Source: Eukaryota sp. TZLM1-RC
Taxonomy: Eukaryota > Protista > Metamonada: BaSk clade
Assembly: GCA_040285825.1 (NCBI GenBank)
Contig: JAUPSS010000013.1
Location: 1 to 64,000, forward strand
Length of the DNA stretch: 64,000 nucleotides
Direction of reading: 5' to 3'
Shown: positions 40,666-56,563 of the stretch, piece by piece
Layout of the letters: each line of letters opens with the position of its first letter
How positions within the stretch are numbered: the first letter of the stretch is position 1
Program-made: the position numbers and the translations under genes
The notes under the pieces: model-generated
What the model was told of the DNA's origin: nothing
Databases searched by the model: none
The model's input: only the letters and a program-made list of their open reading frames with translations

Positions 40666-42077
40666 GGTGTCGAAGTTAATAGTTATTTAGATGATACTTA
40701 TATTCTTTGTCAAAAAGAAGTTAATATTGAGTTGTTATTAAATGAATTAGAATTAATTTTCAAGCAAATTGGTTTGAAAATTGAATTTGACAAAAACCGA
40801 AGTGTTTTCAGTTGAAGATGATTTCATGTGTTTGGGATCTCCAATAGGTTCTACTGAGTTTGAATCCTCTTTTATAATTCAAAAAGTTCAAAATGAATTG
40901 ATTCCCAGTTTATTTTTATTAAAATCATTACCACTACAAAATCAATTTTTAATATTTAGACATTGTATTAATTCAATTTTGATGTACTGGGCCCGAACAG
41001 TTCCCTATGAATCCACCAAAATGGGTTTTCATCTTTGGGTTTCAGAATTTGTTGCTTATTTCAACTTAATAGGATTGGAAGAATCAAATAATTTAGATTC
41101 AATTTATTTGCCTCATTCTTTGGGTGGATTAGGGTTTCTCCATCTGGGCCAAGTTGCACATATTTGCTATTCAGTTTCTGTATACTTGGCTGTACGTGAT
41201 CTTGATTTAACAAATTTAATTCCAAGTGATCAGTATAGGGTTTTACTATCAGCTTTATCACCTTCTTTTGCTGGTTTTGACTCAATCTGGGACAAACGAA
41301 TTAAAATTTGCCAACGTCAAATCACTTATTTATTTTATAAGGAAAAATTGAGTCTTTTGAAGGAAAAACTATCAGAATGTGAACGACTACAATTTATTTC
41401 AAATTGTGACAGTCAATCTTCTTGTTTTTTGAAAGTCTTGCCTATTTCTCAAAATTTCACGTTCTCAGATGATTGCTTTAAATACCTAATAAATCTGAGA
41501 TTGCTTCAAGGAGAACAATTTGTGATATGTCCTTTGTGTGGTTATGGAGACCTAGGCTTAGATCACTCTTTTCAATGTAGAAAAGTATCGAGAATGGTTA
41601 CACAAAGACATGACGAAGTAAATAATTTTATTAACGAATTAAATAATTTTGAATCTGAAAAAGAATTTAAATTTGGTTTAAATAAGCAGTAACGTGTTGA
41701 TGTATTTCAAACGTCAACCAAAATTGCTTTTGATGTTACCATAGTTGGAGGTTATGGTAATAATTGGAGTGATGCTTTTTCGAAAGCTTATTCTGATAAA
41801 ATTGCAAAGTATTCAATTTTAAAAGAATTAAATTTAATTAACCAAATTGTTCCTCTCGTTTTTAGTGTTCATGGGGGTTTTTACACTAAAACAAAAACAC
41901 TGTTTGACCAATTTGGATGGAATGAGGTAGCAGATGAAATTAGTTGTATCATTTTGAAGAGTAGCTTTAAATGCCACATTGCTTTTAATTATATACTTCA
42001 AAAGAAAAGAGAAGATCGTCAATGTTGGTAGGTAGTTTTTTTAGTATTCAAGTAGTTTCTTCTTAATTTTCAATAAA
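40666..42077 (+). mobile_element. CRE-like non-LTR retrotransposon family A, copy 1 (5'-truncated)
   Basis: TSD AGTAAATCGTATCA (40652-40665 and 42078-42091); begins just before RT motif SYLDD; LPHSLGGLG, CPLC..HSFQC..RHD knuckle, RLE motifs FDVTIV..KIAKY..PLVFS; premature TAA at 41690; ends CAATAAA. Confidence 0.92.
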
Positions 42078-42530
42078 AGTAAATCGTATCAAAAACGATA
42101 CTCTTACACTTACAGCAATTGTTTTATTAGTTTACAACATTCAATTGTATACTTTGACAATTTAATGTTTAACAATTTATCAACTCAATTAATTCAAATA
42201 TATACAAAATCAATTGAAAATGTAATCATGAGTTTGTACTGATCAAGTAACACATAGCCAACATTACTCACACACAATTTCACACAAAGTTTGATCACAA
42301 GTTGATCACATCTAGTACATAAGGACTACATGCAACTCACCTAATCACACCAATGACCATTCAACCAATCATACCAATGACTACTCAAATGATCATAGCA
42401 CGGACTTTAACACCACAATTGTTATATTAATTGTACCAAAATGGACTTTAAAGATTTGACCAATGATTGTAATAAACAACCATTGGTCAATATACGAAAC
42501 TAGGAACTTCATATGAGCCTCAGTAAATCG
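42078..42530 (-). repeat. Single spacer repeat unit between family A copies (T-tract-deleted variant)
   Basis: Carries TATACTTTGACAATTT instead of the usual long T tracts. Confidence 0.9.
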
Positions 42531-43793
42531 ATGATTTCATGTGTTTGGGATCTCCAATAGGTTCTACTGAGTTTGGATCCTCTTTTATAATTCAAAAAGT
42601 TCAAAATGAATTGATTCCCAGTTTATTTTTATTAAAATCATTACCACTACAAAATCAATTTTTAATATTTAGACATTGTATTAATTCAATTTTGATGTAC
42701 TGGGCCCGAACAGTTCCCTATGAATCCACCAAAATGGGTTTTCATCTTTGGGTTTCAGAATTTGTTGCTTATTTCAACTTAATAGGATTGGAAGAATCAA
42801 ATAATTTAGATTTAATTTATTTGCCTCATTCTTTGGGTGGATTAGGGTTTCTCCATCTGGGCCAAGTTGCACATATTTGCTATTCAGTTTCTGTATACTT
42901 GGCTGTACGTGATCTTGATTTAACAAATTTAATTCCAAGTGATCAGTATAGGGTTTTACTATCAGCTTTATCACCTTCTTTTGCTGGTTTTGACTCAATC
43001 TGGGACAAACGAATTAAAATTTGCCAACGTCAAATCACTTATTTATTTTATAAGGAAAAATTGAGTCTTTTGAAGGAAAAACTATCAGAATGTGAACGAC
43101 TACAATTTATTTCAAATTGTGACAGTCAATCTTCTTGTTTTTTTGAAAGTCTTGCCTATTTCTCAAAATTTCACGTTCTCAGATGATTGCTTTAAATACC
43201 TAATAAATCTGAGATTGCTTCAAGGAGAACAATTTGTGATATGTCCTTTGTGTGGTTATGGAGACCTAGGCTTAGATCACTCTTTTCAATGTAGAAAAGT
43301 ATCGAGAATGGTTACACAAAGACATGACGAAGTAAATAATTTTATTAACGAATTAAATAATTTTGAATCTGAAAAAGAATTTAAATTTGGTTTAAATAAG
43401 CAGTAACGTGTTGATGTATTTCAAACGTCAACCAAAATTGCTTTTGATGTTACCATAGTTGGAGGTTATGGTAATAATTGGAGTGATGCTTTTTCGAAAG
43501 CTTATTCTGATAAAATTGCAAAGTATTCAATTTTAAAAGAATTAAATTTAATTAACCAAATTGTTCCTCTCGTTTTTAGTGTTCATGGGGGTTTTTACAC
43601 TAAAACAAAAACACTGTTTGACCAATTTGGATGGAATGAGGTAGCAGATGAAATTAGTTGTATCATTTTGAAGAGTAGCTTTAAATGCCACATTGCTTTT
43701 AATTATATACTTCAAAAGAAAAGAGAAGATCGTCAATGTTGGTAGGTAGTTGTTTTTTAGTATTCAAGTAGTTTCTTCTTAATTTTCAATAAA
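42531..43793 (+). mobile_element. Family A copy 2 (5'-truncated, frameshifted)
   Basis: TSD AGTAAATCG; nearly identical to copy 1; same 3' end and same TAA. Confidence 0.92.
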
Positions 43794-44249
43794 AGTAAAT
43801 CGTATCAAAAACGATACTCTTACACTTACAGCAATGGTTTTATTAGTTTGCAACATTCAATTGTATACTTTGACAATTTAATGTTTAAAAATTAATAAAC
43901 TCAATTAATTCAAATATATACAAAATCAATTGAAAATGTAATCATGAGTTTGTACTGATCAAGTAACACATAGCCAACATTACTCACACACAATTTCACA
44001 CAAAGTTTGATCACAAGTTGATCACATCTATTACATAAGGACTACATGCAACTCACCTAATCACACCAATGACCATTCAACCAATCATACCAATGACTAC
44101 TCAAATGATCATAGCACGGACTTTAACACCACAATTGTTATATTAATTGTCCCAAAATGGACTTTAAAGATTTGACCAATGATTGTAATAAACAACAATT
44201 GGTCAATATACGAAACTAGGAACTTCATATGAGCCTCAGTAAATCGTAT
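43794..44249 (-). repeat. Single spacer repeat unit (T-tract-deleted variant)
   Basis: Same variant as 42078-42530. Confidence 0.9.
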
Positions 44250-54550: not shown

Positions 54551-54881
54551 ATTCCGACTTCCATGGCCACCGTCCTGCTGTCAATATCAACCAACACCTT
54601 TTCTGGGGTCTAAATGAGTGCACACTTAGGCACCTTAACATGTCTTTTGGAGCATCCCACATCGCCAGTTCTGCTTACCAAAAATGGCCCACTTAGAGCT
54701 ATTATTCAATTGCAACGATCACTTAAGTATCATTTCAAATCTTGCCCATTTAAAGTTTGAGAATAGGCTAAGGACATTGCGTCCCTAGTACCTCTAATCA
54801 TTAGCTTTACCGGACAAAACTAAAACAAGCTCCAGCTATCCTGGGGGAAACTTCGAACGTAACCAGCTACTAGCCGCTTCG
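52881..54881 (-). pseudogene. 28S rRNA: 28S rRNA pseudogene segment corresponding to 30340-32340
   Basis: Collinear with the intact copy, with about ten visible substitutions; bounded on both sides by retroelement insertions. Confidence 0.95.
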
Positions 54882-55373
54882 TAAGATGATTACTATGAGA
54901 CATAATGAAGTTAAAGATTTTCTAGCTTCACTGATGAATTATTCGGTTGCAAAATCCTTTAAGGTTGGATTAAAAGAATTTATTGTGGATCTTTTCGATG
55001 AAGATAATCGTATTGCTTTTGATATAACAATAGTTGGTGGCTATGGTAAGAGCTGGAAAGATGCATATTCCAATGCATTTGTCGGGAAAATTAGGAAGTA
55101 TGATGTGTTAATCAAGAAAAATTTAATTAATTCAATTATCCCACTTGTATTTAATGTACATGGTGGTTTTTATTCGAGAACAATTTCATCATTTAATCAA
55201 CTTGGTTGGTCAGATTTGTGTCCAGAAGTAGCTACTATTATTGCTAAGGGTAGTTTTAGATGTCATTCTGCATTTAATTTTATTCTTAGTAAAATTAGTG
55301 AGGCTCGTAGGTTTTGGTAGTTGTACTTGTTTGTTTTTCTAGTTTTTTAATTTTTAACTATTATTTCTATAAA
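54882..55373 (+). mobile_element. CRE-like family D, copy 1 (RLE region only)
   Basis: TSD AGCCGCTTCG (54872-54881 and 55374-55383); RHNEV, FDITIVGGYG, KIRKY, PLVFNVHGG; protein related to family A. Confidence 0.9.
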
Positions 55374-55383
55374 AGCCGCTTCG

Positions 55384-56563
55384 TTGTCAGGTACTTAGAC
55401 GACACTTATGTTCTTTGTCAAGATCACATTAATTGTTCTGACATCATTTCTACTTTATCGGTTAAATTTGTTAATATTGGTCTTTCTTTGAATTTATCAA
55501 AAACCAAAGTTTTTTCTGTTGATGAGGATTTAGAAGTGTTGGGGGTGCCAATTGGTTCTGATGATTTTAAAAGTACTTTTATCGAGAGCAAAGTGAATTC
55601 TGAGTTACTTGATAAATTAAAGTTGATCGATTTACTTCCAATTCAGAACCAATTAATTCTTTTTAGGTTCTGTATTAACTCAATACTAATGTACTGGGCA
55701 CGTACTGTTCCTGCTTCTATAACTGTACTTGGATTTTCAAAATGGGTACATGAATTTAATTTATTTTTTAATTTTAGTCGATTTGAAAACTTGAAATTTC
55801 CCAATTTAATTCACATGCCTCTATCTTCTGGTGGTTTAGGTTTGCAGCACATGGGTTTCATTGCACCTGTTGCTTTTTCTGTTAGTTTATATCATGCGGC
55901 CAGAGATCTCGATTTAATTCCTTTAATACCTGCTCATTTCATTGATATTATTAGTTCTACTCTTCACTCTTCTTTTGTAGGATTTGATAATATTTGGGAT
56001 AAGCATATTGAAGTTAATCAGCGATCAGTTATACAAAATTCTTGGAAAAAGGAAATTAATTTTATGTTAAACAAAATGAATTTTGAAGAGAAGTTACAGT
56101 ATGAGGCTAATTGTAGTTCTTTTGCTTCTTCTTTTTTAACTTGCTTGCCAACTAACCTGAATTTAATTATTTCTGATGATTGTTTTCATACTTTGTTGAA
56201 ATTGAGACTTTTAGTTGCACATGAATTTTCATTGTGTCCAGGTTGTGGTTATACTAACTTGGGTATGGACCACTCTTTCCAATGCCGGAAAGTCTCTAAG
56301 ATGATTACTACAAGACATAATGAAGTTAAAGATTTTCTAGCTTCACTGATGAATTATTCGGTTGAAAAATCTTTTAAAGTTGGATTAAAAGAATTTACTG
56401 TGGATCTTTTCGATGAAGATAATCGTATTGCTTTTGATATAACAATAGTTGGTGGCTATGGTGATAGCTGGAAAGATGCATATTCCAATGCATTTGTCGG
56501 GAAAATTAGGAAGTATGATGTGTTAATCAAGAAAAATTTAATTAATTCAATTACCCCACTTGT
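55384..56563 (+). mobile_element. CRE-like family D, copy 2 (from YLDD to RLE; 3' end deleted)
   Basis: RYLDDTY, VLGVPIG, MPLSSGGLG, CPGC..HSFQC..RHNEV; breaks at CCACTTGT into 28S sequence. Confidence 0.9.

Follow-up and report, generated by a model that had tools for sequence, protein, structure and literature searches.

Site-specific retrotransposons that carry a restriction-like endonuclease (RLE) are the basis of current RNA-templated gene-insertion tools. To our knowledge, almost everything known about such elements comes from R2, which in animals uses just one site. Both R2 and R4 rely on co-transcription with 28S and on cutting of the co-transcript by a hepatitis delta virus (HDV)-like ribozyme (PMC3774820), and R8 and R9, which are offshoots of R2, have changed target within ribosomal DNA (rDNA), the only two target changes reported in the R2 superclade (PMC5035012). 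In the NeSL clade, the LIN/R5 lineage of planarians has diversified its targets across 28S and transfer RNA (tRNA) genes, and Utopia elements of oomycetes carry RNase H upstream of the reverse transcriptase (RT) and form tandem stacks in which the upstream part of the target is missing (PMC4640811). Here, we describe four RLE-type families (A–D) of retrotransposons that lack long terminal repeats (non-LTR elements) in 64,000 nt of DNA from the metamonad Eukaryota sp. TZLM1-RC (assembly GCA_040285825.1, contig JAUPSS010000013.1, positions 1 to 64,000 of the forward strand; hereafter the window). Bases 48227-62608 of the window are identical to those of the same numbers in the contig, so that the window is the contig's start. 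Related proteins come from TZLM1-RC (Skoliomonas litria), GEM-RC1 and TZLM3-RCL, which we take for the isolates of Skoliomonas whose genomes have been published, in papers that make no mention of retrotransposons. Families A–D very probably constitute a single Skoliomonas-specific clade that inserts by target-primed reverse transcription at fixed 28S-derived nucleotides and that has diversified through change of target.

Element copies in the rDNA of the window

Nine 5'-truncated copies, comprising four of family A, two of B, one of C and two of D, were located on the plus strand between 40666 and 56563, where all element reading frames run antisense to the ribosomal RNA (rRNA). Rfam searches of the window identified a single complete rDNA unit, which lies on the minus strand (28S 29928-33230, 5.8S 33390-33550, 18S 33650-35432) and a second, broken 28S at ~52856-55446 on the same strand. 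Self-comparison resolved the spacer into tandem repeats of ~460 bp (1-19206, 26604-29997 and 37868-40665), every one of which includes a copy of the final ~70 nt of 28S. Beyond the intact rDNA unit lies a decayed, rearranged array edge, and the features concerned are as follows.

29928-33230, minus strand: intact 28S gene, with empty targets for A (29955/29956), B/C (30339/30340) and D (32330/32331)
40666-42077, plus strand: A1, 5'-truncated and starting within the RT YxDD region; 14-bp target duplication AGTAAATCGTATCA at 40652-40665 and 42078-42091
42078-42530, 43794-44249 and 45598-46050: single spacer units between the A copies
42531-43793, plus strand: A2, with the 9-bp duplication AGTAAATCG and the same 5' junction as A4
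44250-45597, plus strand: A3, with the 12-bp duplication AGTAAATCGTAT
46051-47310, plus strand: A4, with a 9-bp duplication
47311-48143, minus strand: intergenic spacer repeat, 1.8 units, each opening on a duplicate 28S 3' end in which the A target lies
48144-48394, plus strand: B1, final 251 nt of family B, its 5' side joining the middle of a spacer unit
48395-48409: target copy AACCTGTCTCACGAC, 15 bp, after B1
48410-51554, plus strand: B2, 3.1-kb family B copy, 5'-truncated inside an RNase H-like tail
51555-51564: target copy AACCTGTCTC, 10 bp, after B2
51565-52880, plus strand: C1, 1.3 kb, 5'-truncated, with three frame breaks and its 28S junction at the same nucleotide as B
52881-54881, minus strand: 28S fragment, sense 2891 down to 891, 99.45% identical to intact 30340-32340
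54882-55373, plus strand: D1, final 492 nt of family D; 10-bp duplication AGCCGCTTCG at 54872-54881 and 55374-55383
55384-56563, plus strand: D2, spanning the RT YLDD motif to the endonuclease
56564-56632: 28S remnant after D2, 69 nt, sense 756-688

Copy A4 holds an open frame of 401 aa (46059-47264) that spans the thumb, the CCHC knuckle and the endonuclease and is followed by a 3' untranslated region (UTR) of 46 nt; an exact look-up of its product gave no match. Because A2 and A4 have a common 5' junction, they represent one insertion that was duplicated later. B2 contains four frame breaks, three of which are assembly errors or private to this copy, since short-read contigs from the same sample have one extra base at 48750, 49932 and 50235. 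In D2, a deletion at 56563/56564 took the 3' end of the element together with 134 nt of 28S.

Junctions and target sites

Each family was joined to its target at one fixed nucleotide; on the 28S sense strand these junctions fall at 2891/2892 (B and C), 900/901 (D) and 3275/3276 (A). All four A copies (3' terminal sequence ...TTTTCAATAAA) terminate in ...CAATAAA joined to AGTAAATCG, at 42077, 43793, 45597 and 47310. B1, B2 and C1 terminate in ...AATAAA joined to AACCTGTCTC at 48394, 51554 and 52880, equivalent to 30339/30340 of the intact gene, and D1 terminates in ...CTATAAA joined to AGCCGCTTCG at 55373, equivalent to 32330/32331. Points of 5' truncation varied while the 3' junctions were fixed, as in RLE-type site-specific non-LTR elements; target duplications measured 9-15 bp for the four families in the window, within an overall range of 8-17 bp, and within stacks the element copies were separated by regenerated copies of the target. 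Read on the plus strand, the B/C site (AAACT^AACCTG) and the D site (CTACT^AGCCGC) have the core ACT^ARCC in common at the junction, and the A site, CCTC^AGTAAA, is without it.

In the intact rDNA unit of the window, the A, B/C and D sites were all empty. The A copies occupy the copies of the 28S end that are carried by the 460-bp spacer repeats and not the 28S gene; at least 49 spacer copies of this site are empty in the window, and the copy inside the true 28S gene is unoccupied. What we take to be the R2 flank matches sense 2193-2212 with one mismatch, which would put the R2 site, also empty, at 2192/2193, with the B/C site 699 nt downstream of it and the D site 1292 nt upstream.

An initial annotation of this DNA, made from the letters alone, had proposed four families of site-specific RLE retrotransposons aimed at rDNA sequence and inserted at three sites. 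The families, sites and coordinates were borne out by the junctions at 2891, 900 and 3275, and the nature of the elements by these fixed junctions in combination with the RT, CCHC and endonuclease regions described below. The short 3' UTRs ending in TAAA were found to be 46-80 nt long across the families, and the distances of ~700 nt 3' and ~1290 nt 5' of the R2 site agree with those obtained here through the assumed R2 flank. The same annotation placed family A at the 28S 3' end; insertion of A in the 28S gene itself was rejected, as the occupied sites are spacer copies and the gene copy is empty.

The same sites in sister species

Both the B/C and the D site were occupied in the other two isolates. 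GEM-RC1 (locus L003) carries an apparently full-length B-like element of ~4 kb, inserted antisense at the same B/C nucleotide with the 15-bp duplication AACCTGTCTCACGAC; at a distance of 12 nt within that gene, a relative with RNase H is inserted in the sense orientation at ACCCTA^CTGA. The B/C site of TZLM3-RCL (L004) holds a truncated antisense relative with both 28S flanks intact and a 12-bp duplication. At the D site, GEM-RC1 (L007) carries an antisense stack that includes copies only 15 bp long, TZLM3-RCL is occupied antisense twice (L006 and L009), and all D-site copies in these two isolates terminate in ...TAAA joined to AGCCGCTTCG. The 28S of GEM-RC1 and TZLM3-RCL is only 82-88% identical to that of S. 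litria, and the B/C and D sites are therefore old.

S. litria itself has two intact, full-length sense relatives, P0009 (L002) and P0234 (L011), at 2903/2904, 12 nt from the B/C site. The antisense orientation that had been ascribed to all families thus applies to the A–D copies and fails for the related families of S. litria and GEM-RC1, which lie in the sense orientation at 2903/2904; the proposal that every family of the genome is antisense was rejected on account of P0009 and P0234.

Chance was excluded by the combination of identical 3' junctions with differing 5' truncations and duplication lengths and by the use of the same sites in two other species. Common junctions could also arise if a few chance insertions were copied at the DNA level, through unequal crossing-over or segmental duplication, with no site-recognising nuclease involved. 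This would suit the single 5' junction of A2 and A4, the resemblance of the A copies plus spacer units to a higher-order repeat, and the position of the whole region at a rearranged array edge. It is nevertheless exceedingly improbable, given that A1, A2 and A3 differ in their 5' ends and duplication lengths, that B1, B2 and C1, which are of differing family or length, end at the same nucleotide, and that other contigs, as well as two species with such divergent 28S, show the same junctions with families and truncations that differ.

Several further observations were made at these and other loci. Outside rDNA, locus L001 (JAUPSS010000011.1, 796242-812763) is pieced together from fragments of A, B and C that have 80-94% identity with their counterparts in the window; there too B is followed by C, and family B still adjoins AACCTGTTTC, a decayed 10-bp remnant of its target. 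At L010 (JAUPSS010000002.1, 3402042-3412022; positions 7033-9981 of the locus), another related family was seen, P0233 (1186 aa), behind which 5'-truncated copies of ~746 bp are stacked head to tail, all with a frame for CCHC and endonuclease; with no rDNA nearby, this would be a possible fifth, non-rDNA target. The apparently full-length antisense copies at L003 (GEM-RC1, B-like) and L006 (TZLM3-RCL, D site) have a run of T followed by CCTTC at their 5' ends (L003 4524-4545 and L006 3400-3420), which, as it occurs in different families and species, may be a start or promoter signal held in common. The D-site insertion at L006 also contains a 216-bp antisense piece (4801-5016), which starts exactly at the 18S 3' terminus and separates the element's 5' part from its 3' part.

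Encoded proteins

The RT domain RVT_1 (Pfam) was present in B, in D and in a C-like fragment at 57147-57608, and the A copies of the window begin at or after the YxDD motif. In B2, the order of domains is RNase H-like tail, zinc fingers, RT, helical region, CCHC knuckle and endonuclease. Of the RNase H, only the tail can be aligned, with P0009, a relative that has the domain, at residues 193-300 (E=1e-4); RNase H upstream of the RT was clear in the sense families (Pfam E=1e-18) and was not detected in the B-like copy of GEM-RC1. When 28 diverse relatives were aligned, the C, C, H and C residues and two D residues proved invariant, with K..KY in the consensus, and A, B, C and D each retain the CCHC, the two aspartates and K..KY. 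An AlphaFold2 model of the last 387 residues of B (mean confidence score pLDDT 87.4) matched the C-terminal half of R2 from Bombyx, zebra finch and turtle (TMq 0.63-0.68, E ~1e-8), and the next structural matches were PD-(D/E)XK cap-snatching endonucleases. Motifs and model therefore together identify a C-terminal CCHC knuckle and a PD-(D/E)XK endonuclease.

Given this R2-like fold and domain order, the elements might belong to an already described rDNA-specific lineage (R2, R4, R5/LIN, R8 or R9) at a published site. In addition, the mosquito RT element, which we take to be an apurinic/apyrimidinic endonuclease (APE)-type member of the R1 clade inserted ~700 nt downstream of the R2 site, would lie near the B/C and sense-family sites. 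Such membership is very unlikely. Matches to R2 structures cover the RT core only, with E=1e-6 for P0009 (the protein of sister family E) and E=1e-9 to 1e-10 for outgroups from animals and fungi, so that no close RT kinship with R2 was found and the elements are not R2. The R2 and R1 sites, the former located by the assumed flank, lie elsewhere and are empty; the occupied sites are at least 699 nt from the canonical R2 site, and the elements run antisense to the rRNA. Rfam detected neither an HDV-like nor any other ribozyme in the window or in full-length copies, which is absence of evidence only. No close relative was found outside Skoliomonas either: a profile of the Skoliomonas clade recovered its own members to e-148, followed by a gap until E=1e-76, after which came proteins of Aureobasidium and Kwoniella and unnamed environmental proteins. 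Finally, the orientation is opposite to that of the co-transcribed R2 and R4 (PMC3774820).

Phylogeny and target switching

A careful maximum-likelihood tree was built from 360 C-terminal columns with 11 Skoliomonas and 62 outgroup rows, and gave the following supports (ultrafast bootstrap / Shimodaira–Hasegawa-like approximate likelihood-ratio test, SH-aLRT).

The 11 rows from Skoliomonas together: 99/90
Sense-oriented families (site 2903): 100/99
Antisense elements as a whole: 100/95
Elements at site 2891 (B, C, GEM-RC1 and TZLM3-RCL): 100/99
A + D: 100/99
A + D joined by the elements at site 900 in GEM-RC1 and TZLM3-RCL: 96/62

A quick tree from the RT only agreed, grouping the four full-length Skoliomonas rows together (SH-aLRT 88). 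Branches track the target site with one clear exception, namely that A (3275) is the sister of D (900). Because these sisters use different sites, a switch of target has occurred, which bears out the target switching put forward in the initial annotation; most simply, the switch ran from 900 to 3275 in the S. litria line. Protein identity fits the earlier description of A and D as relatives at different sites (~48-50%) and of B and C as a more divergent pair at one site (~35-41%), and B and C are two old lineages at that site. A wider reading, plausible if tentative, is that one clade uses at least four 28S nucleotides (900, 2891, 2903 and 3275) in both orientations, and that A switched recently, either in the wake of its target's amplification in the spacer or as the cause of it. 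On this reading, the ACT^ARCC core of the B/C and D sites suggests that a local cleavage preference of the nuclease was kept while the DNA-binding parts changed. If this is true, comparison of A with D and of B with the sense families would reveal the residues that set RLE target choice.

Relationship to the CRE clade

The elements could alternatively be a new, rDNA-targeting branch of the CRE clade, which would make them kin of the trypanosomatid elements CRE1/2, SLACS and CZAR. Their order of C2H2-type N-terminal fingers, RT, CCHC and endonuclease fits CRE. The closest named relatives are fungal proteins of Kwoniella, Wallemia and Aureobasidium, which we assume to resemble the CRE-like Cnl1 group, and a neighbouring cluster in the Atlas is mostly of Euglenozoa, a weak lead only. 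We nonetheless consider the placement unlikely. An exhaustive phmmer search (71 matches), as well as profile and cluster searches, returned Skoliomonas proteins, a few fungal or animal hypothetical proteins and unnamed environmental proteins, with no CRE, NeSL, R4, Giardia or R2 reference among the matches listed. No named trypanosomatid protein occurred among the 30 of the 71 phmmer matches whose sources were looked up, nor among the best 120 profile matches. The fungal proteins form a separate clade (starred in the tree), away from that of Skoliomonas, and the targets are 28S-derived and not spliced-leader RNA genes. The motifs RPIAxG, QxGVxxGxE, DxxNAFN and LPxxxGGLG, previously cited as marks of CRE, are not diagnostic of it, since they are common to all retrieved endonuclease-bearing relatives and form the consensus of that whole set, including fungal and animal proteins. 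RNase H upstream of the RT is a further lead pointing away from CRE, because the only other elements reported to have it are those named Utopia in oomycetes, which belong to the NeSL clade (PMC4640811).

Other features of the window

The spacer repeat array is interrupted at 19207-26603 (minus strand) by a Ty3/gypsy-type LTR retrotransposon that encodes protease, RT, RNase H and integrase, has an open pol frame of 1240 aa and is GC-rich (0.44-0.47 vs. 0.30). Past the last 28S remnant, the patchwork at 56633-57700 forms the boundary between rDNA and unique DNA; it holds family C pieces out of order (C1 763-1198, then C1 6-128) and the C-like RT fragment (open reading frame 57147-57608). The first ordinary gene past the array, at 62617-63978 on the minus strand, encodes an H-type lectin domain and a GT2 glycosyltransferase-like region, and its gene model in the record is of 1440 aa.

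Proposed mechanism

We propose that the endonuclease first nicks the rRNA-sense strand after a T, at ...CAGGTT^ for B/C, ...GCGGCT^ for D and ...ATTTACT^ for A. The T-ended 3' end would then anneal to the A-rich ...UAAA end of the element RNA and prime cDNA synthesis, which fits the 1-2 nt of A that are common to element end and target. Cutting of the other strand about 10-15 bp away would produce the target duplications, incomplete copying would produce the 5' truncations, and repeated insertion at the regenerated site would build the head-to-tail stacks. Antisense orientation would rule out R2-style co-transcription with rRNA, as the initial annotation had soundly argued; since the elements could not be made within the RNA polymerase I precursor, they would be transcribed from their own promoter or by read-through. 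No RNA run was found to hold family B sequence, so that transcription, its strand and the promoter are putative. The D site (900) and the B/C site (2891) probably came into use before the three Skoliomonas isolates split. Family A would have arisen from D-like stock in S. litria, using 28S 3'-end sequence amplified in the spacer, where insertions break no gene.

Several points weigh against target-primed insertion by a single clade diversified through change of target. All window copies are 5'-truncated and C1 is broken in frame; the B, C and D copies all lie within a dead partial rDNA unit at the array edge, and the 5' side of the B stack is without the expected 28S sequence. Fragments also occur outside rDNA (L001 and L008), the link of A + D to the D-site elements of the sister species is moderately supported (96/62), the survey of sites in sister species covers B/C and D, and no RNA run was found with family B sequence.

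Comparison with known systems

This is a lineage-specific radiation of rDNA-targeting RLE retrotransposons in a protist host, with target switching and with most families antisense. It takes rDNA-specific retrotransposition well outside animals, and in a mode for which the precursor transcript of the rRNA could not serve. One free-living metamonad genus contains several targets in one gene, in both orientations and conserved across species, and its close protein pairs with different targets make RLE target specificity approachable by comparison and domain exchange.

Like R2, the Skoliomonas elements encode a single protein with RT, CCHC knuckle and a C-terminal RLE of matching fold, and their 5' junctions vary while the 3' junction in rDNA is exact. 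Unlike R2, to which they are only weakly similar in sequence, they use other sites, are antisense with no 28S co-transcript, have no detected HDV-like ribozyme, make duplications of 9-15 bp, inhabit a metamonad protist and have RNase H upstream of the RT, at least in the sense families and, as an RNase H-like tail, in family B. Target diversification, this position of RNase H and tandem stacks recall the NeSL clade; Utopia, in contrast, targets U2 small nuclear RNA genes, and the RNase H may have been gained independently of it. With CRE1/2, SLACS and CZAR the elements have in common that they are site-specific protist RLE elements with N-terminal zinc fingers and target duplications, whereas those elements target spliced-leader genes and sequence kinship with them was not seen among the matches listed. 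The nearest comparison lies within the same genome, where the sense families P0009 and P0234 belong to the same clade as A–D, have the same domain order and target 28S 12 nt from the B/C site, but differ in their opposite orientation, in the nucleotide used and in being represented by intact full-length copies.

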